Assembly (NCBI GenBank): GCA_904063045.1
Contig: CAJFCJ010000002.1
Coordinates: 3,591,891 to 3,655,890, forward strand
Length of the DNA: 64,000 nt
From: Dimorphilus gyrociliatus
Taxonomy: Eukaryota > Animalia > Annelida
Direction of reading: 5' to 3'
Shown: positions 24,819 to 48,081 of the stretch, in pieces
Numbering within the stretch: the first letter of the stretch is position 1
Layout: the number at the start of each line of letters is the position of its first letter
Position numbers and translations under genes: made by a program
The notes under the pieces: model-generated
The model's database searches: none
Told to the model about the DNA's origin: nothing
The model's input: the letters and a program-made list of their open reading frames with translations, nothing else

Positions 24819-26772
24819 ATGCCTGTCGGTAAGAATTATTATACACATATATACGATATATGTTTATTTTAAATATATATAGATGCAAAAAAAAAGAGAA
24901 TCTTTAAATATAGTAAAAAAGAAACAATTTTGGGAAATATATGAAAATATTAATGATACTAATTATCTTTCTTTTATTTATTTAATTAGAATTGCCCGAA
25001 GTAATTCTGATTTCATTATTTCTGCCCAATGTCACGACGCTGATTGTTATTGCTTTCTTTTATGTATTAAGAAGTAGAAAGCTATGCAGTTGTAAAAAAC
25101 AACCAGATAAAAATTATTCTAGTAAGTACAACGCTATCAATTTATAAAATATTTTATAAATTGATTCATTATTATCGTATAAATACGAAAATAACATCAT
25201 ATTTATGTTATATTCGGACAAACTAAAGTTAAATATTGAATTATTAAACAAATATTGAATTAAAAATCAGTTTAAAAATTTATAGAGTTAGAATAAAACT
25301 AAAAATCTTCCCCATTTTTCAATATGTTGAAAAGAATTCACCTTGAAATAAATAGTTAATAGTGAAGTGACATGCACCTGTAGTCCTATTTTAATACTAT
25401 TAAATGTTATTATTATGAAATTGCTTACTGCAGGTGATAGTAAAGGGAGCTATATTGAAACAAAGCTGTCGGATATACCGCAATCTTACTCGAGAAGCAA
25501 TTCCGAGAGAACATCAAACAGAAGTGAGACAAAATTATTAACAAAGAAAAAAAAAGAGACGGTGCATGTTATTCAAGATTCTGTTACCAAATTTTGTGAT
25601 TCTCGTTCATTAACACAAGCAACAGCCGAAGAATTAAGAATTTTTGGGTTTCAAAGTGAAGAAGAGTTAGATGCTCTTGACCATAAAACTGTTGATCAGC
25701 TAGATATAACTCCAGCTCAAAAATGCTTATTAAGAAAGACTATTACTATCAAGCATAGTGAAGACTTTAATCATTCTTCCCACAAACAAGGAAGCCACAA
25801 CGGATATAAAGGAAGGGATAATTCCGTTAATAGCAACAGTACTGCAGGTATCTATTGATTATATGCTGTGTACTTGTAAATATAAATAATTATCCATGAA
25901 ACAGCCCACTATCACCTTCGTATAAAACGAAGGAAGTTTACCATAAAGTTTTCATTAATCTTTAATAGCAAGCACTTTTCTAATTAAATATACAATCAAA
26001 TACAGTATAGCCAATCTAATCTCTTAGTAAATTTTGAAGCTATATCTTAAAGCTTTAGACGTCGTTAGACGCTCCCTCTTTAGTTTTAGGATAATGTAGA
26101 TACAGCATATACTATATATTAGAGATAGATGGAGCTAAATAAAGATTAAAAAAAATATACAGGATTTTGTTATTTACTTAATAAACTTATCTGATAGAAT
26201 CATTGTTATTTGACAATAGTCTTCGTTCGTGATGAATTGTGCAATCTATTCTAATTTATACTATTTTTATATAATTTTTCTATTCTCTTCTCCAGGTCAA
26301 AGCTTTGAGAGGTCTCATAGTGGAGATGAAAAAGATTCATCGTACCCTTTGCTTCATCAGTATAAGCATGGAAAAAGCCAAAGGCCTAGAGAATATACTG
26401 GCTATTTATCCGATCCAGGGCTATATAAACTTGCCGAGTCAATTGGAGAAAGTTGGAGAAAATTGGCAAGCAAATTGAATATTTCTCCTAGTGAAGAGAT
26501 AGACGTTCGTCGAAGTGATAGTCTAGCCGATGGAGTTGCCCGTATGTTGATGAGGTGGAGAGATGATCAGCAAGGTAATGACGATACGATAAGAAGGAAT
26601 TTATGCCAAGCATTAGATTTTAGTGGTAGAAAAGATTTAGCAGAAATGATTGATATTCGTGTAAGTATACAAAATACTTATTAATTGGATAAGTCATTAA
26701 GACATCTTTATTTTATATTTTAAGGTACAGATGAATAAAATCAGAGAAGGAAAAGTATTTTCTAAAGTATAA
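24819..26772 (+). CDS. Death-domain protein with an upstream SAM-like domain; exons 24819-24828, 25434-25847, 26296-26660, 26725-26772, ~278 aa
   Basis: Death domain LYKLAESIGESWRKLASKLNIS...ARMLMRWR...LCQALDFSGRKDLAEMI is clear. The SAM-like pattern V..F...L...EEL..FGF.S.EEL..L....DQLDI.PAQKCLL is weaker. Splice phases are consistent; the first and last exons are less certain. Confidence 0.75.
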
Positions 26773-28397: not shown

Positions 28398-29675
28398 TTA
28401 CAAGTTTAGTTCAATAGAAAATTTCTTAATATAGTCGGAAAATTGTTTATGATAGTATTCTTTTCTAATTAAATTATCTTTATAAGAATGTGTGCCTTTC
28501 TTATGCTCCCTTTGGCTTGTTATATAAGTTTTGCATGTTCTTTCCCATTCATCGGTCCAAGGCATTTCTAATTTTTCATACAGATCTTTAAATGTCTCCA
28601 TTGGGTTCCTCACAATATCTTTAAAATAAACATCAATAAATCTATTCTCTGTTTTGTCCTTTTCTTCCAACTCTTCTCTCTGTTCTAGTAATAAGTTAGT
28701 TCCTTTCAAGCACATATCGGAAACGTTATCACCCATGACTTTTAAATCTCTTCCAAAAATAGAAAAAAATTGTGAACTTGACATGCCAAGTAGAGATGTT
28801 ATAGAGGCTAGTGACTTGGCAGGATCCCTATGAATTGTTACTATTTTAGCATCTGGAAAAACTTCCAATAGAGCAGCAACATTTGTATAAGGACTATGGC
28901 TCATTGTCAATAATCTCTCTGTTGGATAGTTGTACATGTAGCATTGCATCATCAACTTTATGCTTCGGTACATTTCAACCCAAGTTGATTTATCTAAGTT
29001 CATCAAGTAGTCCATATAGTCGTCTAGATTATTGATAACCATTGCCATATAGAATTGAGCTCCTACACACATTAGATTCATCAAAATATCTTCGGGACTT
29101 CTTGCAAAGAGAGGGTGAGCACTTTCAATTCGTTTACCCCATAGATACTTTGCTATGCCCAATCTCCAGTCTACTTCTTTTATAACCTTGTTATCACTCT
29201 CTGATAGTGGATTCGAAGGCGGTGGAACAAGGACATTCTGAAGCCATACTTCAGGACAATACCATCTCTTATCCTGTTGCATGGTTACATGCATGAATGT
29301 ACTACCTGTTCTTGGAAGAGTAACGATAAAGACTGGATTTTTTATGTCGACATTTCTAACTTTAGGATTTTCTTTGACATAATTATCAAAGTTGTATCTG
29401 GATTTAATAACATCGTATAGCTGATTATAATAAATAAATCTACCAGTTAAAGTGATATCGCTCGCATTGGATAGTCCATTCATCATAAGTTTCAAATTTT
29501 TCATGAAGAATTTATCTTTCTTGATATGCTCATAGTGTACCTTATTCATTCCTTTAATTGCCTGCTCATAGTTCAGAGGAATTAAATGAATGTTCAAAAG
29601 ACTCAATAGAGCTCCAACATTATCAATTACAAATTTTATGGATAGTACTAAGAAGCTGATAAACTGATTCGCCAT
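28398..29675 (-). CDS. Sulfotransferase family protein (P-loop fold, Sulfotransfer_3-like, bacterial-type), single exon, 425 aa
   Basis: 5'-PAPS-binding motif NPVFIVTLPRTGSTFMH, 3'-phosphate motif KIVTIHRDPAKSLAS, and the later FIDVYFKDIVRNP...LYEKLEMPW segment typical of this family. Confidence 0.85.
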   Translation of the reverse strand: MANQFISFLVLSIKFVIDNVGALLSLLNIHLIPLNYEQAIKGMNKVHYEHIKKDKFFMKNLKLMMNGLSNASDITLTGRFIYYNQLYDVIKSRYNFDNYVKENPKVRNVDIKNPVFIVTLPRTGSTFMHVTMQQDKRWYCPEVWLQNVLVPPPSNPLSESDNKVIKEVDWRLGIAKYLWGKRIESAHPLFARSPEDILMNLMCVGAQFYMAMVINNLDDYMDYLMNLDKSTWVEMYRSIKLMMQCYMYNYPTERLLTMSHSPYTNVAALLEVFPDAKIVTIHRDPAKSLASITSLLGMSSSQFFSIFGRDLKVMGDNVSDMCLKGTNLLLEQREELEEKDKTENRFIDVYFKDIVRNPMETFKDLYEKLEMPWTDEWERTCKTYITSQREHKKGTHSYKDNLIRKEYYHKQFSDYIKKFSIELNL

Positions 29676-32219: not shown

Positions 32220-34400
32220 ATGGCAGCCAATTTGTCAATTGTAAATCTCTTTTATACGTTTTTTATCCTGAAAATTTTATCGATTTGGGTGTGTTCTGGT
32301 AAGAAAATTAAGTATATGGTTGAATATTTCTATTTGATCTTTCCAATTTGTTAGGGCAAGAAATATATTGCCAAGACATTTGGGGATCTATTGGCTTTGG
32401 AGTGGTAGGAAGCTACAAATGTTTCTTTATTCATCCACTAAATTCTCCTCGAAGACTTCGAGGCGTGACGTGGGAAGTTGCAAAACAATTTTGCGAAACT
32501 AGAGGAACAAAACTCGCTGAAATAAATAACTTTTTAGAGCAATTTGCTATTTCAACAAAGTTCGTAGTATTAATCAACCTTTCATTTATTACTTTTTGTT
32601 ATTTATAGCAAAATAAACATTCTTTCTAACTTTTCAATAGACTTCGAGAAGAATTTATCAAAAAGAAAGTACCCAACAGCCCACAATATTTCCGTATTGC
32701 TGGTAGAGAGAGTGACGCCGGAGATTTTCATTTCCTAGGTTTTCTTAAATATTTGTTTTGCTAATATCTAAAATTATCAATAATTTTATGGTTTTGTTCG
32801 ATTTCAGATGGACGTCTCTTGAAACAACAGGGATGCTTTATAACCAAACTACCTATACATGTTGCCGATTCTGAAGAAATTACCCCAGAAAGCTGTATCG
32901 AGGCCTGTAAAGTGAAAAACAAGAAATACTCCGGCATTAATCAATTAGGAGTATAAAATTGACAATTAATAATAGAAACAGTGTAATTTTACAAGAAACT
33001 TTCAGAATATAGTCTCTTGCTTTTGTGGAGACGTTTTCTCGAGGGGCAGAGCGGTAAGATGTACTACTCGATGCTTCAATTTGCGACATTCACCTTATAA
33101 TCACGAATTCTTTTGCGGATCTAATCAAGATGCACATGCATTAGCTATATACGCCACATTCGGTAAGAAATAAATAATTAAATCATATGCTCTAAGATTA
33201 TAATTAAACTTAGGGGCCTATTCGAAATTTGATTACGGACAGCCTAGCTGGAAACAGAATACATCTACTGATTACCACAGCTGCATAGTAATGAAAAGAT
33301 TTTCTGGTAGATTCGATGATCAGAGATGCTTCGAAAGAGGTCGATCCGCTTTATGCGAAATTCGGGGTATAACAAAAACTGTTCTCCTTTACACTAATGC
33401 AATATTCTGTCAAGGATTTCAACTCGAATCAATTTTTTATATTTTGCAGAAACGGTTGAATCTTTCTGTAATTCCATGAATTATATGTGGCTAAAAGAGG
33501 TACAGAGATGTATTAAATTTAAAGTTCAATCGTTTAATAGCTGGTTTGATGCTCGAGAATCGTAAGGAGGATAATACATTATTTAATGATTTATCCATTT
33601 AGAATTTTTAATATTCAACAGTTGCATTCGAGACAAGGGAGATTTATCAATTGTTGACGATCGTGAATATTATCAAATTGCCTCTAATATATTAATAAAG
33701 AATTATAGAATAAATAACTTTTGGATTGGAGCAATGAACAGAAGATATACATGGGATAGTACTAAAACTCCTATAACTTATTCAAGATTTTTTCATGCTG
33801 AATCATTCAGTTCCAAAGAAAATTGTTTTGCTTTCGATCTTGCTGCCCAAAGTGAACAAGGGGATATATCTTGGGTTGATTTAAGTTGTAAAGATGCTAG
33901 AGATCACGGTTTAATTTGTATGCTTGGTAAGACTAACTGTTACTTTATAACAACGAAAATTACAAAATCATTCATCCTTTCAACAATAGAATTAAACGAT
34001 CCTATAAAAGGAGACAACGATACAACAACTGTACAAACTAACATCGAAACGAGCAAATTAACAACGAAAACCTCACAAATTCTTACAACAGAAAAGTCCG
34101 TACCCACTACCTCAACGAAAATTTCAACTAAAAATCCCACTTCATCAAAAGGGTATGAAACGTCTAATTCGGACGAATCGTTAACAGAACATCCAATAAC
34201 GACTGTGAAAGTGCCGACTACTGAAATTACCCAAAATTTTACGATACCGTAAAAAGCAATCTTTAAGATTTTAGATAGATTTGAAGTTAGATTTTAGATA
34301 GAAATTTTTGTTATTATAACAAGACGAAGACATTAGTAGTTTTTTAATACTGTCTTTAGCAATTCTAACAATTCTATTTAAAATAGTACTTATTAGATGA
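32220..34400 (+). CDS. C-type lectin/WSC domain receptor-like protein, paralog A: signal - CTL1(N) - WSC - CTL1(C) - CTL2 - Thr-rich stalk - hydrophobic C-terminus
   Basis: Exons 32220-32298, 32355-32559, 32641-32738, 32808-32950, 33006-33162, 33214-~33366, then CTL2 exons. WSC: GCF...ITPESCIEACK..KYSG...SCFCG...C...C...FCG. CTL2: FWIGA...NCFAF...WVDLSC. The last exon (34337-34400) is tentative; without it the frame stops at 34252. Confidence 0.8.
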
Positions 34401-35511: not shown

Positions 35512-37693
35512 CTAATTCTGAATTAATCTCTCAGTTTGTTCCCTATCTCCATCTCTGGATCTATAAAGAAGAACATTTACACATATATATATATATTAGT
35601 ATAAATTTATAACTATAAATAAATCATTTGGTAAATATGACAAATAGTATCTATAAAAGAATTAAAATTTTACCTTATAAAATCATTTCGACGGCAAAAT
35701 TTCTGAAAGCATTTTTTCAAACCCAACAAAACTGGATCATAATTGTCGAAATGGGATAAAAATGTAATTGCAAAGAAACTAAAAACAATAGGAATAGTTC
35801 CTACGTAAAACGGCCATTTATATTTCGCCTAAAAAGAAAAAAAGAAAAAATTCAAGGTTTGTTTAATTGTTTTCCAGTAGTATTATAAAGCAACTTACGG
35901 ATTTAACAATAATATCGGCAAGCATCGAAAGTGGAACTGTAAGACTAAGTGAAAAAGTTCCCACAAGTGATGAGGTAAGAAAACATCCCCTGTTTACAAT
36001 AAAAATTCCATTATAGAGAATTAGAAATTTTCCATGAAAGGTATAAGTGACTTCTTGAAAGAAGTACCTACCAAAGCCAAAATAAATCACTTAATACAGT
36101 GCCAATCAACCCATTAATAATCAAATATAACCACAAAGTTTTATCTGGCCATCGAAAAGGTTCTACTTTAGTTGCGTCCAAAATAAAATATCCAGGCCAT
36201 AATAACAGACATATAAAAAGACCGACGAATCCGAAAAACATAGGCACATTCAGTTTATCTTCATGATCTACTTTTCGCTTTAATAGAACTAAATATACTG
36301 CATACATTAAAGCACTGAGCAAGGACCATAATATATCCATGGGAACACCTTTTCCAAAATTCAGCTCGGATAAACATACCAGAGTCACTCCTCCTATTCC
36401 GAAGAGAACACATACTAATTTCGATAGTGTAAATTTATCGTTGGTATTCGAAGGGAAAATTGCAGCTAGTATTAATGTAAACACTGATGAAGTCGATGAT
36501 AAAACATTAACGACTCCAGCAGCACCAGTTTTGTCAAGGGCCTCCTGATACGAAAATTGAGCGAGAAAATAGATTATAGAGAAGAGGCAGGCAATTTTTG
36601 CAACTTGTTTTGCTGGTAAACTATTAGAATTACGTAATCTAGTTGCCTGCGCTTGTTGATAAGCTGTATAGGATAACCTAGCCAATGAGGCATCATCAGC
36701 TATTGACTCTGTTTAGGAAGATAAATTCTCTTTAAATTTTAGTTAGCTAAACTGCATTTATTACCTGATAAACAGCGTACTTCTGATAGTCGATTAAATC
36801 TTACTCGTCTGGGATTAGACGTTGGAGAATAATCAATGTTTGATTCATTTGAAGAAGATCTCTCAAACTTTACAGGAACATAAATAGGTTCACTCTGCAA
36901 AAATATAGAAACAACTAGAACTGAAATTAGAGAAACTTGAATAAAAAACTAAATAACTCCTCAATATTTCTAACAATACACCTTTTTCATTTTATATAAA
37001 ATCTATGAATTGGAATGTTTTATCTCTTCATCTAAAATATTGAATAATATCCTACTAGTAATTAAAAGTAAAAAAATACTCTTTTCTTATTAATAAACAT
37101 CAATAAACTGATACGGGTAATTGCTCTTATATCGTAGACTAAGTAAATTTTCTGTATGATCAGCATATCTCCCAGGTTTATTGCATTCGCAAAGAAATAC
37201 GTTTCTATACAATTTATTATAATAAAGTGTCAGTGTTTTAAATAAGTAATTATTTTACGCAGTTGTAAAAATTTTACACTTTTGGGATAGTATGTAAAAG
37301 ATAGAAGTTCAAAGAGAATTTGAATTCTATCTTCTATAGTTAATAATTATTAATATTACAATACTTCCCATTTCATATATTTTCTATTTAAACAATAATT
37401 AAAATACTTACTAAAGTTTGCTCTTCATCTGAACTTCCATTATTGATTGCTATTTCGCACCTATGCTTTTTACATTTATCTCTCCATTGCTTGAATAGTA
37501 AGAATCCAAATAAGTAGAGCATAAACATACTATTCTTAAGATAGGTACTGAAAAATGGTTTTGGATATTTCTCCGCCTGGAATATATACTTGGTTAATTC
37601 AGAAGATGCCACCCAAATTATAGCGACCAGGAGCAGAAGAATTATACCCACAACATGCCTCTGAGTACGATTTGTTAATTCTATCCCCAACAT
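35512..37693 (-). CDS. SLC35F5: Solute carrier family 35 member F5 (DMT/EamA fold), multi-exon
   Basis: GIILLLLVAIIWVASSELT.YIF...YPKPFFSTYLK, SEPIYVPVKF, RVRF, EDKLNVPMFFGFVG.F and NGLIGTVLSD.FWLW|GCFLTSSLVGT.SLSLTVPLSM.AD are diagnostic of SLC35F5. Last exon 35560-35512. Confidence 0.92.
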
Positions 37694-40602: not shown

Positions 40603-43005
40603 TTAATAATTAAATTGTTCATTCTTTAAGCCCTTGTCTTCATTTTGAATTATTTGATTTTGAAAATAATTAACATTGTTAGTTTGATCTTGCAATTCTA
40701 ACGTTCCATCACTATTCGCTATCTCTTCTTCCTCTGTTGTTTTGGCAATTAATACGTATGCAAGCACCCTCATAATACCACCAATAATGGCAGCAACAGC
40801 CAAACAAATGACAATTATAACACCTGAAAAATATTTATTAAATAGTAAACGGTATTTTTTTAAATATTTTCTTTCGATATATTACCTATATCTAGCTCAA
40901 GATTGGCACTTTCCTTGATATTCGATGCCTTAAGAATAGACTGAGATGTACTTTTAGTTGAGATTGTTGGGTTAACGGTTGTATTAATGGGTATTGACGT
41001 TTCAAAGGTATCTCGTACAGTTGGTTTATCACTTTTTGAAGGAACTTTCTCAGTTGATAAGCCAGTTTTTTTTGTAGATTTTTCTATAACTTTACCGGTG
41101 GTAGACTCTGGCTTAGGCTTATCAGTAGGTGTCTTGGTAGTCTTAGGCTTATCAGTAGGTTTTTTGGTAGACTTAAATGTTGTAGTTAGCTTAGTTGTAG
41201 GCTTTGTCGTGATTGTCTTTATTTCTGTTAAGATACAGAAAACACTAAATATACCTCAATAAGAGCGGAAAAAATTACCTGACATGCACAAGACACCATT
41301 GTCTTTGCTCATATCGTTGCAATCAATATCTACCCACCCAAATTCTCCTCCTTGATTTTCTATATCAATATTTAGAGCAAAACAATTTTCCTTTGTGCTA
41401 AATGCAGTACTCTTAAGAAACCTCGAAAAAATCATTGATGTATTTGTAGTCGTCCATGTATATTGTCTATTCGAAGCGCCAATCCAGAAATACTCATTTT
41501 TATAAGACGTTTCATGAATTTCTGAAATACGGGTAAATAATTCTTTACTATCAATAACAGCTAAATCTCCTCCAAGTGAATAGCATCTGTAATCATAGAT
41601 ATTATCTTTACTTGTTGATAATTAAAAATTGGATTACTTACGAATCTCTAGCTTGAAACCAATTATCAAATAACTGTCTATTGAAATTAATACATTTGTT
41701 CACAGAGTCTATCCAAGTATATTTCTTTGATTCACAACCAGCTTTGTCAACCTCTGTTTTATAATGTAATTTAACATTTATGATTATAAACCATTAAAAC
41801 TAATACATACTAGTGAGTTCACATAAGGCACTTCTATCTGGTTTAAAGCATTCTTGATCGTCATATCTTGAACTGCTTTTTAATAAAATACAGTTATGGC
41901 TGTCTCGGTCTTCCTTATCTCTAGCCCATGAAGGTTGGTTGTAATCAAATATCGAGAAGATACCTTATTGAAAGATATTGAAAATTGTAACAAAAATTCT
42001 GAATAATAAATCATTCTCACCATCTGTTCTATAAATTGCAGATACTGAACGATCATTGTTTGAACCACAAAAGTAGTCACGATAATTAGATTTTCCTTCT
42101 AGCTGAGTGCAACGTTTTGAACATCTACTTGGAGAGCTTCTATCAAGTATATTATCACAATAGCAGTCAGTAAAGTGCTAAAAAGACAAAATACGTTTAC
42201 TTTTCATTATTATTTTTAACATTTATTTATAAATAAGCAACAAACCTGCGGCTTATAACCATTCTCTTTAACGCTAGCATAGCTATAGCCTTTGCTCTTA
42301 CAATCTTGAATACATTTTTCAGGTGTCATTTCACGATTACTGTCAATAAATGTTTTAAAATTTGAAATATAGCATCCCTGTTGTAATAAAGGCCGTCCAT
42401 CTAATTTTATCAAAATTAATATATGTTAATCAGTTATCTTTTAATGAAATTATTAAAAAACAAACCTATATATTGAAAATCTCCGCCTGCACTCTCTTTT
42501 CCAGCAAGAATGAAATTAGGACGATAGTCAACAGGATTTTTCAACTTGTACTCTCTTCGAATACTAGAAATATATATAAGATAGTTTTTGTTACAAAATT
42601 TTCAAATTTTCACTTACTGAGCTGATACAGCCAGACTTTCACCAAAATTCGTGATCTCAGCTAACTTAAATCCACGAGAGGAACACAAGTCTTTTGCAAT
42701 CAAGAAATTTAATGGCGGAAGTCGATTATCATCCGCTTGAGGAAGAAACACAAAACACTTATTGCTTTGGTCAATTCCAATGCCTTTTATTTTTCCCTCA
42801 TCTTCGCAGTCAACAATATTTTGTCCTGAATATTTGAAACAATTATTAATACTTTAATAGTTGAAAAATGTTGAATGAACTTGTGTAAAAATCGAGCCAA
42901 GCTCTTATAAGATATTATATTCTTACCTGAACACACCCTAATCGATAAAATATTTAAATATATAAATATGAAGTATAGTTTCAATTGAAGATTACTCGAT
43001 ACCAT
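40603..43005 (-). CDS. C-type lectin/WSC domain receptor, paralog B: signal - CTL1(N) - WSC - CTL1(C) - CTL2 - T/K/P-rich stalk - TM - acidic cytoplasmic tail
   Basis: Same exon layout and phases as paralog A (79-nt first exon ending VCS-G). WSC exons lie within 42400-42021 (QGCY...MTPEKCIQDCKSKGYSYA...CYCD...FCG). TM VIIVICLAVAAIIGGIMRVLAYVLIA is in the last exon, 40823-40603. Confidence 0.85.
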
Positions 43006-44930: not shown

Positions 44931-46229
44931 ATGATTCTTCTCCTGTTCCTACTTTTATTTTGTTCCGGAGTGAAATCATTTTCGAAAATTACTCAATGTG
45001 ATTCCTCACCTCTGTGTCGTTGCGTAGTTAATGAGAAGGGTCTCATTCAAAGAGCAATTTGCGGAAGTATTAATGGATATTTGCCTCGTCTCCCAAAAAC
45101 ACCATACGTTCTTCCTTTAGTTTCTTTTGCATATGCTGACTTGAGTCATCTTCCAGCCTATGCCTTTGACGGTGACAAAGTACAATCGTTGGATTTGCAA
45201 GGTAACTCATTTGAAATTGGTTTGAATATTCTAGCATTTCAAACAAAAACAACAAATTTTCTACAAACACTTAATTTGGAATGGTGTAAAATACGGCAAC
45301 TTCGACATCAAATATTTAAGGGATTATACAATTTGAAAAATTTATCCTTAAGTGATAATTCATTGAATATATTACCAGGTGGATTATTTAAGGATTTGAG
45401 GAATTTGGAAAGCTTAAAGCTATCTGGAAATCCTATATGGATAATCCGTCCTAATTTATTTCTTCCCTTAGAGTCTTTAATACATTTAGATATTGGATAC
45501 TGTGCAATAAAATCAATAGAAAAGGATTGGTTTAAAACCATGAAATACTTAAAGCATCTGGATCTAAGAGGAAATCGCATTAAAAACATACAGCCTTTTA
45601 TTTTTGATCAATTGTCACAATTGGAAAAATTATACTTGGGTCATAATTCATTTTTTCGACTTCAGAAAAGGGCTTTATCTAATCTTAGGAATCTTACTGT
45701 TTTGTCAGTTCACGAAGGCTCCTTAGCACTTTTAGACGTTGGAGCAATGGATGACTTAATTAATCTAAAATTTCTCGACTTATCAGATAATAACATTGAG
45801 CACATTCAGGCAGGAGCTGCGGATGTTCCATCAATTGAAAGACTAAACTTAGACGGTAATTATTTACGAACATTACCATTGGATATTAATAAGATGAAAA
45901 ATTTGAAATACTTGGACGTCTCTTATAACCGTTTGGAGACATTTTCATTCTGTTTATTTAAAAGAATAAAAGAACTAAAGTTTTTAAACCTTAGAGAAAA
46001 TCCATGGAATTGCAGGTGCAAATTTTTGTATGTTGTTGACAATTTACGAACAAAAGTCAATTCTCTATGGCCTAAAGAGGAAAGACACCCTGGCAAATGG
46101 AGTTTTATACCCGGAAGATGTGAGAAACCACCTAAAGCTAAGGGAAAATTCTTAATTGATTACCTACACGAACCGAACGTTAATTGCACTTTAGAAAACA
46201 TGGTCTCCCGTTGTTTCTTCCAGGTTTAG
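44931..46229 (+). CDS. Secreted leucine-rich repeat protein (signal peptide, LRRNT, ~12 typical LRRs, LRRCT)
   Basis: CDSSPLCRC cap, repeated LxxLxLxxNxL units and NPWNCRC...C...C C-cap. No TM in the ORF. A possible donor at the end (ccag|gtttag) means a further exon cannot be excluded. Confidence 0.85.
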   Translation: MILLLFLLLFCSGVKSFSKITQCDSSPLCRCVVNEKGLIQRAICGSINGYLPRLPKTPYVLPLVSFAYADLSHLPAYAFDGDKVQSLDLQGNSFEIGLNILAFQTKTTNFLQTLNLEWCKIRQLRHQIFKGLYNLKNLSLSDNSLNILPGGLFKDLRNLESLKLSGNPIWIIRPNLFLPLESLIHLDIGYCAIKSIEKDWFKTMKYLKHLDLRGNRIKNIQPFIFDQLSQLEKLYLGHNSFFRLQKRALSNLRNLTVLSVHEGSLALLDVGAMDDLINLKFLDLSDNNIEHIQAGAADVPSIERLNLDGNYLRTLPLDINKMKNLKYLDVSYNRLETFSFCLFKRIKELKFLNLRENPWNCRCKFLYVVDNLRTKVNSLWPKEERHPGKWSFIPGRCEKPPKAKGKFLIDYLHEPNVNCTLENMVSRCFFQV

Positions 46230-46819: not shown

Positions 46820-48081
46820 TTATAGGGCTTGACTCATGTGCAGAGGACTAATCATTAATTCAAATATTGCATCTTTCAAGTTTGCTCCCCTCAAATTTGC
46901 CTCCTGAAGATCACATCCAGATAGATCGCAAGACTCCAAATCAGCTCCGGCTAATACTGCACCTCTTAAATCACAATTTCTTAAATCGGCTTTTTTTAAT
47001 TTAGCTACTCGCAGGTTTGCGCCAGCCAATGAACTTCCCGAAAGATTTACTCCTTTCAAATTGGCTCCTTCTAAGTTGGTTCTCTGGCCATTCGGTTCTT
47101 CTAGGTTACAACCCCGCATACATGCTCCTTCCAAATTAATACATAGCATTCGGGCCCCCATAAGTGCAGCTCCATCCAGTTGGGCACCTGATAAATTAGC
47201 TCTTTCCATATCACAAAATGCAAAATTTGCTCCTTCTAGATTTGAATTTTTCAAATTAGCGTAACGGAAATTAATTCTTTTTAAGTCTAATCTGGATAAG
47301 TCACATCCTTCAAAGTTCATGCCTTGACAGCGTAGTTCCACATTTGATTGCGTAGCAAGAAGTCTCTTACAGAAGAGTTCTCTGGTAATTTGAAATTCAG
47401 TTTTCCTTTCCTCTTGAACTTTCTTTTCTAAAATCTCAACTAAACTAACAATATTATAGAATCTTGCTTCCTCTAGAACACCTTCGATGGAAAGGCCATC
47501 ATCAAAAATTAACTGACCGTGTCTCAAGTAATTAAGAATTGGTTCAAAGTACTTTGGACTCCTATCAATGAGAAAAGCATTGCTATCGTCAGTTGTACTT
47601 TTCCACGTAAATGGCCTATCATGTTGAAACATACAGCCAAACATTGATTCCGGTTCGCGAGATGCTAATGTTGTCCTAGTAGTCATGAATTTAACTCCAC
47701 CCACATTAAGAGTTATCCAGTCATTGTCCGCTTTTGTAGTTTCTTGAAGATTTGAGAGTTTATCCTCCTTGTTGTTAATTTCAACTTCAACAATATCATT
47801 GTCTCTAATTAATTCTATCGAATCAATTAAACCTCCACTTTCAGTATATAATGAATCTACTTTCAGACTTAGCTTTTTTGTTAACACCTGAGTTAATTCT
47901 GCCAAAGTACTAGGGACAAAAAGGCAAATACCTCTTTTTTCTCCTCTTTTTCTTGCAGTAATTCGTTTTTTTGTTGGTTTTTCACCTACAAATGTAAATA
48001 GAGAAAATTATTCAGATATTTCCTAAAATATTATTTATTAATGGTCGAATATTAAATGACTTGAATCTCACCTGAAAACAT
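46820..48081 (-). CDS. KCTD9: BTB/POZ domain-containing protein KCTD9; exons 48081-48072 and 47985-46820, 391 aa
   Basis: KHA-like GGLIDSIELIRDND, BTB DWITLNVGG..F.TTR.TL...FLIDRSPKYFEPILNYLRHGQL, pentapeptide repeats, and C-terminus PLHMSQ. The first exon MFS-G is inferred from a phase-1 donor. Confidence 0.95.

Follow-up and report, generated by a model that had tools for sequence, protein, structure and literature searches.

A WSC domain very likely nested within a C-type lectin domain in a family of dinophilid annelid proteins

Introduction

Few recognition modules of animals have been studied as thoroughly as C-type lectin domains (CTLDs), whose specificity is made in the long loop region. 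Elaborated-loop lectin folds, such as those of the phage protein Mtd, of other variable proteins of diversity-generating retroelements and of formylglycine-generating enzyme, likewise possess a variable upper-lobe loop region that tolerates additions and makes ligand specificity. What has been added in those folds, however, are elaborations of the loop and not an independent disulfide-rich domain with a Pfam family and exons of its own. The latter is the situation described here for two paralogous genes, A and B, of the dinophilid annelid Dimorphilus gyrociliatus, whose genome is very compact: in the products of both, a WSC domain very likely stands inside the first of two CTLDs. The two genes lie in a window of 64,000 nucleotides (contig CAJFCJ010000002.1 of assembly GCA_904063045.1, positions 3,591,891 to 3,655,890), and all positions below are those of this window unless another contig is named.

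The diversity of the C-type lectin long loop has been reviewed (PMC7618208), and WSC and lectin domains are on record as neighbours in bivalve CTLD proteins (PMC10140915). The closest described systems, polycystin-1 and these bivalve proteins, together with a further D. gyrociliatus gene designated L008, combine the same Lectin_C and WSC modules in proteins that are secreted or of type I membrane topology, have mucin-like stalks and presumably serve glycan recognition. There the modules stand side by side, whereas in A and B the WSC domain interrupts the long loop region of the lectin. L008 (G000:C7:3779500-3783500) encodes a signal peptide, then a WSC domain followed by a complete lectin domain, and after these a membrane segment with a long cytoplasmic tail, a tandem and not a nested arrangement. 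Full-text searches of the literature met neither a nested WSC/lectin pair nor a long loop region with an inserted domain; WSC and lectin domains appear there only as neighbours. The nested layout is thus apparently undescribed; an initial annotation, made from the sequence of the window, likewise knew the two modules as tandem neighbours and not as a nested pair.

Exon structure and transcription

The DNA of the window is eukaryotic and rich in AT, and its introns measure 50-80 bases; both strands were read, and splice sites and phases were verified by script. Gene A comprises nine exons on the forward strand (32220-34252) and gene B ten on the reverse strand (43005 to about 40603), and all introns of both are bounded by GT..AG. 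The spliced model of gene A equals, residue for residue, the public D. gyrociliatus protein P0001 (DgyrCDS1724, 504 amino acids), as found by a full HMMER search with its largest exon, while that of gene B is identical to P0003 (DgyrCDS1726, 609 amino acids); these public proteins were used for the whole-protein analyses. In both genes the intron between the two WSC exons is in phase 0, the introns outside them are in phase 1, and omission of both exons leaves the frame intact, again as established by script. The exon layout in A and B is far beyond chance. The symmetric phase 1-1 cassette reported for both paralogs by the initial annotation is therefore borne out by splice sites and phases; its bounds for the four WSC exons were exact (Table 1), every peptide string that it quoted was found, and its layout of the block from 32641 to 33370 held in all but the end, exon 6 of gene A stopping at 33366.

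Two public RNA runs, X1 and X2, were available as assembled contigs at a depth of about 3-7, which drop rare variants and can show presence but not absence. X2, from the same organism, holds the joints 32298>32355, 32559>32641, 32950>33006, 33162>33214, 33366>33450, 33561>33622 and 33926>33990, and a single one of its contigs spans exons 4, 5 and 6 into exon 7, with the WSC exons spliced to the C-terminal half of the lectin domain. The only uncovered junction of gene A, 32738>32808, falls in a gap between D. gyrociliatus contigs and is covered in an intronless ortholog contig, L037. X1, a coral metatranscriptome, contains a form 95-99% similar with the same joints wherever it is covered.

Further, the nested form is present in two related taxa. 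L037, a Logan contig of 1780 bases and a spliced transcript of one of them, carries a single unbroken frame of 533 codons with both lectin halves and the WSC domain; it codes for the ortholog protein P0008, which is 73% identical to A across the nested part. In a third taxon a genomic contig of 6.5 kb (L036) has exons, GT..AG sites and phases (1/0/1) all as in gene A. In the reading favoured here the WSC domain belongs to the protein constitutively.

The insert

The insert is a complete WSC domain. Its scores against Pfam WSC (PF01822) are 25.3 bits for P0001, 25.2 for P0003 and 27.6 for exon 4 of gene B alone, all slightly below the cut-off of 27.8, and inserts of paralogs exceed that cut-off (62.4 bits for the single-exon WSC domain of L003 and 39.1 for that of L007). 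Its eight cysteines are in register with those of six ordinary WSC domains of the same genome. AlphaFold, given an alignment of 32 rows, assigns the WSC part (model residues ~107-200) a predicted local distance difference test score (pLDDT) of 84-96, and Foldseek against the PDB ranks the Kremen ectodomain (E 1e-4) and yeast Wsc1 (template modelling score, TM, 0.65-0.68 by target; root-mean-square deviation 2.4 Å) highest. The WSC domains of Kremen1 (PDB 5FWS/5FWT) and Wsc1 (PDB 7PZ2) have the same fold (Foldseek E 1e-4 to 2e-3) and the same eight-cysteine pattern at a sequence identity of only about 20%; unlike the nested insert, they are free-standing or placed in linear arrays.

Probable halves of one lectin domain

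The segments flanking the insert are very likely the two halves of one CTLD, here called the N-half and the C-half, with the WSC domain nested within. The reading of a complete WSC domain inside the long loop region of the first lectin domain, just before the EPN/QPD position, had been put forward initially and is borne out by the sequence: the insert comes after the WIGL equivalent (FRIAG in A, FILAG in B) and the DFHFL/DFQYI strand, and before Y-G-Q-P-S, whose QPS is the equivalent of EPN/QPD.

Given that the lectin signal in the halves of A and B is weak, which itself counts against such a reading, the case leans on more canonical paralogs. In L004 Lectin_C positions 3-71 (28.7 bits, above the curated cut-off of 22.6 bits for Lectin_C, PF00059) pass without a break into WSC positions 2-45 within a single open frame, and Lectin_C is taken up again at 71-106 in a later exon. 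The N-half of L003 scores 36.7 bits over Lectin_C positions 3-62, and in L007 WSC is followed by Lectin_C 67-106 within one open frame, the C-half scores of the paralogs being weak (71-106, 67-106). From 12 ordinary lectin domains of the same genome, each contained in one exon, a CTLD profile was made; it matches N-halves over 9-93, 15-77 and 10-69 and the C-halves, without exception, from 84 or 85 to 125, and these coordinates place the break between the W-x-W-x-D-G strand and the following x-F-x-N-W. In four paralogs the two halves complement each other in profile coordinates, and the break falls on the same profile position each time. The same profile matches residues 47-140 of P0003, the N-half of gene B, at positions 10-84, and exon 2 of gene A at 22-57. 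Likewise, when C-half profiles that exclude A, B and the ortholog were applied, the C-halves of A and B scored 16.1 and 9.8 bits, values reached by none of 500 composition-preserving shuffles. BLASTP alignments run through the junctions themselves: the frame of L004 aligns with P0001 residues 64-171 across the 5' junction (E 7e-9), that of L007 with P0001 residues 131-277 across the 3' junction (E 0.008), and that of L027 across the 3' junction of gene B (E 6e-4).

The cysteines bear on the same question. Three in the N-half, eight in the WSC domain and three in the C-half are invariant in A, B and the ortholog, and if the WSC cysteines pair internally, at least one bond must join the halves, as the canonical C1-C4 bond does. 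Cys32, 49 and 73 and Cys251, 266 and 275 of P0001 align, as a matter of register only, with cysteines of ordinary lectin domains, and the C-half has the spacing of C2, C3 and C4 as well as the QP-x and x-D-D/E-x-C motifs in register with them. In ESM Atlas models of P0001 and P0003, which provide leads only, the CTLD neighbours (chondrolectin, thrombomodulin, CD302) span residues 35-279 and 31-271, respectively, at TM ~0.3, and the WSC neighbours align over 126-229.

Several results weigh against a single split domain. The halves have a pLDDT of 26-69, without a confident fold, in both AlphaFold runs, of which the one with a 3-row alignment reached a mean pLDDT of 49.7 and the one with 32 rows 63.4, confident for the WSC domain only; the larger alignment had been extended only by ordinary C-halves and WSC domains, and these added rows may bias the model. 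Structure prediction thus gave the WSC fold but not the discontinuous lectin fold with bridging disulfides that the initial annotation had named as support. Pfam searches of A and B exon by exon gave the halves either E 0.033 (exon 2 of A, Lectin_C positions 3-31 of 107, 15.4 bits) or nothing, and found no Lectin_C match in the C-half exon of A. Profiles of the halves had no significant match among PDB sequences, the N-half reaching E 0.3-9 against CTLDs of the IgY receptor and DEC-205, and hhalign found no significant similarity between the halves and lectin domain 2. The WIGL motif is degenerate in A and B, where the paralogs read WIGG, WLGA, WLGF and WLGY. Finally, the residues of Ca2+ site 2 are incomplete in both proteins, with QPS, a His before C2, and FDD (A) or YDD (B) in place of WND; classical Ca2+-dependent sugar binding is therefore not predicted, sugar binding at this site is doubtful, and any putative binding in A and B is probably non-canonical. 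The paralogs have EPN (L003), QPN (L004 and L007) or QPD (L027), and the Asn of WND is replaced in all of them.

Pfam applied to the whole of P0001 and P0003 reported a second Lectin_C stretch, which was not itemised; the other exon matches (GoLoco, Corona_6B_7B) were rejected as spurious or weak. When whole ordinary lectin domains or their N-halves were added, MAFFT repeatedly aligned the lectin N-halves with the first half of the WSC domain, with which they share a C...W/T..C...C..G..A pattern; this was taken for an alignment trap and not for homology. A deeper alignment for structure prediction was therefore blocked.

On such grounds it might be argued that the flanks are not one domain at all, and that the protein is a linear string of a degenerate lectin-like fragment or linker, a WSC domain and an unrelated Cys-rich extension. 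The low AlphaFold confidence of both flanks would fit that arrangement, as would the failure of Pfam, PDB and hhalign comparisons to reach significance with the C-half of either A or B by itself. Complementary half coordinates that break at the same position in four paralogs do not; nor do C-halves that beat 500 of 500 shuffles against ordinary lectin C-half profiles, odd cysteine counts (three and three) that need a cross link, a C-half in register with ordinary domains in its C2/C3/C4 spacing and motifs, or Atlas-model CTLD neighbours that span both flanks. A linear string is consequently quite improbable.

Family, origin and intron loss

Genome scans with WSC and Lectin_C, after which the loci were read, bring the family to at least six genes in D. 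gyrociliatus. The four beyond A and B, namely L003 (contig 12), L004 (contig 14), L007 (contig 1) and L027/L029 (contig 7), have the same overall layout and the same insertion point. Their introns vary around that point. L004 lacks the 5' phase-1 intron that A, B, L003, L007, L027/L029 and the ortholog on L036 share, whereas L007 and L027 lack the 3' phase-1 intron, which A, B, L003 and L004 retain. A, B, L003 and the ortholog on L036 have phase 1 on both sides of the cassette, and A, B and L004 also carry the phase-0 intron inside the WSC domain. The boundaries that are free of introns make the nesting independent of splice prediction.

The uninterrupted lectin domain 2 of L003 contains a phase-1 intron directly after W-T-W-I-T, the homologous site. 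In another ordinary lectin domain, L034, a phase-1 intron lies four residues beyond this site, and the introns of three others fall in this loop too, but elsewhere in it or in a different phase. An intron 'downstream of the WIGL motif' has also been recorded for vertebrate lectin genes (PMC514892). The shared insertion point, domain order and intron positions argue for a single insertion followed by duplication and intron loss, and the exon-shuffling origin proposed initially is plausible, backed as it is by the phase-1 intron at the same site of the uninterrupted sister domain of L003; a phase 1-1 module entering a phase-1 intron should leave just such a pattern. As in classical phase 1-1 shuffling the module is symmetric, and here a phase-1 intron also occupies the homologous site of an uninterrupted sister domain; whereas shuffled modules normally go between domains, the recipient intron in this family lies within one, and the outcome would be a nested fold.

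Two loci, L005 and L006 (C1:1749605 and C1:1757041), were rejected as family members; they are weak own-genome matches beside an ABC transporter, and neither is a lectin gene. Contigs C123, C95, C75, C43, C38, C183 and C7 (2.94-2.99 Mb) carry partial Lectin_C matches (often ~40-107) among many F5/8 type C matches, and lectin domains there may be combined with or interrupted by other modules. A broader view, in which the long-loop phase-1 intron of annelid lectin domains would be a docking site where whole binding modules, here WSC, enter the ligand-binding face, producing composite heads that skipping, at a low level or at certain stages, could toggle in A, B and L003, is unlikely.

Sequence searches place the family in dinophilid material only, at a reach that is poor for relatives of 25% identity. 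Word-index searches with P0001 and with alignments of 3 and 15 rows returned P0001, P0003, P0008 and two fragments and did not retrieve the public proteins of L003, L004 and L007; a full HMMER search with lectin domain 2 returned only 7 proteins. That second domain is itself easily recognised (Pfam Lectin_C 53.7 bits over P0001 residues 308-415 in A and 53.2 bits in B).

Is the insert a switch?

Alternatively, the WSC exons might form a regulated cassette. Skipping (32738>33214 in A, 42466>41963 in B) would yield a plain protein with two lectin domains and toggle between two specificities, and the phase 1-1 symmetry preserves the frame in A, B, L003 and L036. Exon 3 has a weak donor (G|GTTTTC in A, G|GTTTGT in B), contig 6 of X2 ends exactly at 32738, the joint 32738>32808 is uncovered, and rare variants are lost from contigs of this kind. 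Nevertheless, the assembled contigs of X1 and X2, at the depth given above, contain inclusion joints and no skip joint such as 32738>33214, and the sole full-length transcript contig (L037) carries the insert. The introns flanking the cassette are 47-51% identical to those of the ortholog, no more than other introns are. Skipping is impossible in three paralogs, L004 lacking the 5' intron and L007 and L027 the 3' intron, and a skipped product would have a turn ~2-3 residues short of the length usual in the ordinary lectin domains of this genome. The switch by exon skipping that the initial annotation had entertained is thus not supported, and a regulated cassette is very unlikely. The notion that the nesting is a prediction or assembly artefact, either from fused genes or from exons of a WSC gene lying in an intron of a lectin gene, has nothing in its favour beyond the general risk of automatic gene models and is already refuted by RNA contigs that join the WSC exons to the lectin C-half exon and onwards, by the whole frame in the intronless mRNA contig of another taxon (L037), by junctions inside single open reading frames in L004, L007 and L027, and by the same layout in the genomic contig of a third taxon (L036).

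Constraint on the putative split domain

Between A and its ortholog, protein identity is 98% in the C-half, 75% in the N-half, 67% in lectin domain 2, 61% in the WSC domain and 41% in the tail. The exon of the C-half, 50 residues long, is 98% identical among three dinophilid taxa (33214-33366; L036 4962-5114; L037 797-949), with synonymous sites that are not unusually conserved. Identical residues share a codon at 52-63% in all four domains, and at 34% in the tail, between A and the ortholog. Given this similar synonymous divergence across domains, the conservation of the C-half is at the protein level, and it points to the half of the lectin domain that bears the binding loop as a putative functional core and the most constrained part of the protein.

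Coordinates and neighbouring genes

Table 1. Exons of genes A and B and the introns that flank the WSC cassette of gene A, in window positions.
Feature	Position	Strand	Content
Gene A exon 1	32220..32298	+	Start codon and signal peptide; ends in phase 1; joint 32298>32355 in X1 and X2 contigs
Gene A exon 2	32355..32559	+	Lectin domain 1, first part of N-half: Cys32, Cys49, Cys73; W..AK.FC..RG.KLAEI helix region
Gene A exon 3	32641..32738	+	Remaining N-half: FRIAG (WIGL equivalent), DFHFL; ends in phase 1; covered by X2 contig
Gene A intron 3	32739..32807	+	Phase 1, GT..AG, 5' side of WSC cassette; splice without contig coverage in D. gyrociliatus
Gene A exon 4	32808..32950	+	First WSC half; Pfam WSC positions 15-46; AlphaFold pLDDT ~95; joint 32950>33006
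Gene A exon 5	33006..33162	+	Second WSC half; ends in phase 1; eight WSC cysteines align with ordinary WSC domains; Foldseek Kremen, Wsc1
Gene A intron 5	33163..33213	+	Phase 1, 3' side of WSC cassette; joint 33162>33214 in X2 contig
Gene A exon 6	33214..33366	+	Lectin domain 1 C-half: YGQPSW, Cys251, FDD, Cys266, Cys275
Gene A exons 7-8	33450-33561, 33622-33926	+	Lectin domain 2, a C-type lectin domain without interruption; RNA joints
Gene A last exon	33990..34252	+	Thr/Ser-rich tail and stop; without membrane segment
Gene B exon 1	42927..43005	-	Signal peptide
Gene B exons 2-3	42825-42618, 42563-42466	-	Lectin domain 1 N-half; ends in phase 1
Gene B exons 4-5	42400-42246, 42177-42021	-	WSC domain between phase-1 introns; exon 4 Pfam WSC 27.6 bits
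Gene B exon 6	41963..41811	-	Lectin domain 1 C-half; 9.8-10.1 bits against C-half profiles, 0/500 shuffles as high
Gene B exons 7-10	~41753-41640, 41586-41279, 41226-40884, 40822-40603	-	Lectin domain 2; stalk rich in Thr, Pro and Lys; membrane segment; short cytoplasmic tail; coordinates derived by matching protein exactly to DNA, accurate to 1-2 bases

A single-exon sulfotransferase-like open reading frame (ORF) of 425 amino acids (28398-29675, reverse strand) adjoins gene A, and a Sulfotransfer_1 gene of 425 amino acids (1013-2290 of L036, reverse strand) lies beside the ortholog; the neighbourhood is therefore conserved. In vertebrate WSCD1/2, as an Atlas row records, a WSC domain is fused to a sulfotransferase domain. 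Visual inspection of translated ORFs suggests four other neighbours: between A and B a multi-pass EamA/SLC35-like carrier (36068-37693, reverse strand), a leucine-rich-repeat protein with a signal peptide (44931-46229, forward strand), a BTB and pentapeptide-repeat protein (46820-47905, reverse strand) and an ORF with a death-domain-like stretch (26229-26684, forward strand).

Conclusions

The explanation favoured here, and a likely one, is that proteins of the A/B family carry a WSC domain constitutively nested in a discontinuous first lectin domain, and that this arrangement arose by a phase 1-1 insertion. The predicted order in the protein would be signal peptide, lectin domain 1 with its nested WSC domain, lectin domain 2 and a mucin-like stalk, followed by an anchor or by none; B and several paralogs would be anchored in the membrane and A, which has no membrane segment, would be secreted. 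The WSC domain enters at the turn after the W-x-W-x-(D)G strand of the long loop region, some ten residues before the equivalent of EPN/QPD. The N-half, contributing strands, two helices and cysteines C0, C0' and C1, and the C-half, contributing the binding-loop region, strands 3-5 and C2, C3 and C4, would then close into one fold, with the C1-C4 disulfide bridging across the insert and the WSC domain standing beside the usual ligand face of the lectin. Such a protein could bind glycans, could be a bifunctional lectin as was suggested initially, and might present a composite or two-site binding head. As to origin, one phase 1-1 WSC module may have entered a pre-existing phase-1 intron of a lectin domain, with gene duplication and differential intron loss to follow.

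These proteins also occupy a blind spot of the databases, since a domain that is split falls under the Pfam thresholds: the precomputed Pfam lists for P0001 and P0003 hold only WSC and the Lectin_C match of the second domain, and the proteins are annotated as WSC plus one lectin domain. More broadly, a lectin fold that tolerates an insert of ~100 residues at one defined turn would be useful for lectin engineering. The family would also represent a clean case of exon insertion within a domain: a sister domain still shows the recipient intron, and the paralogs display different stages of intron loss.

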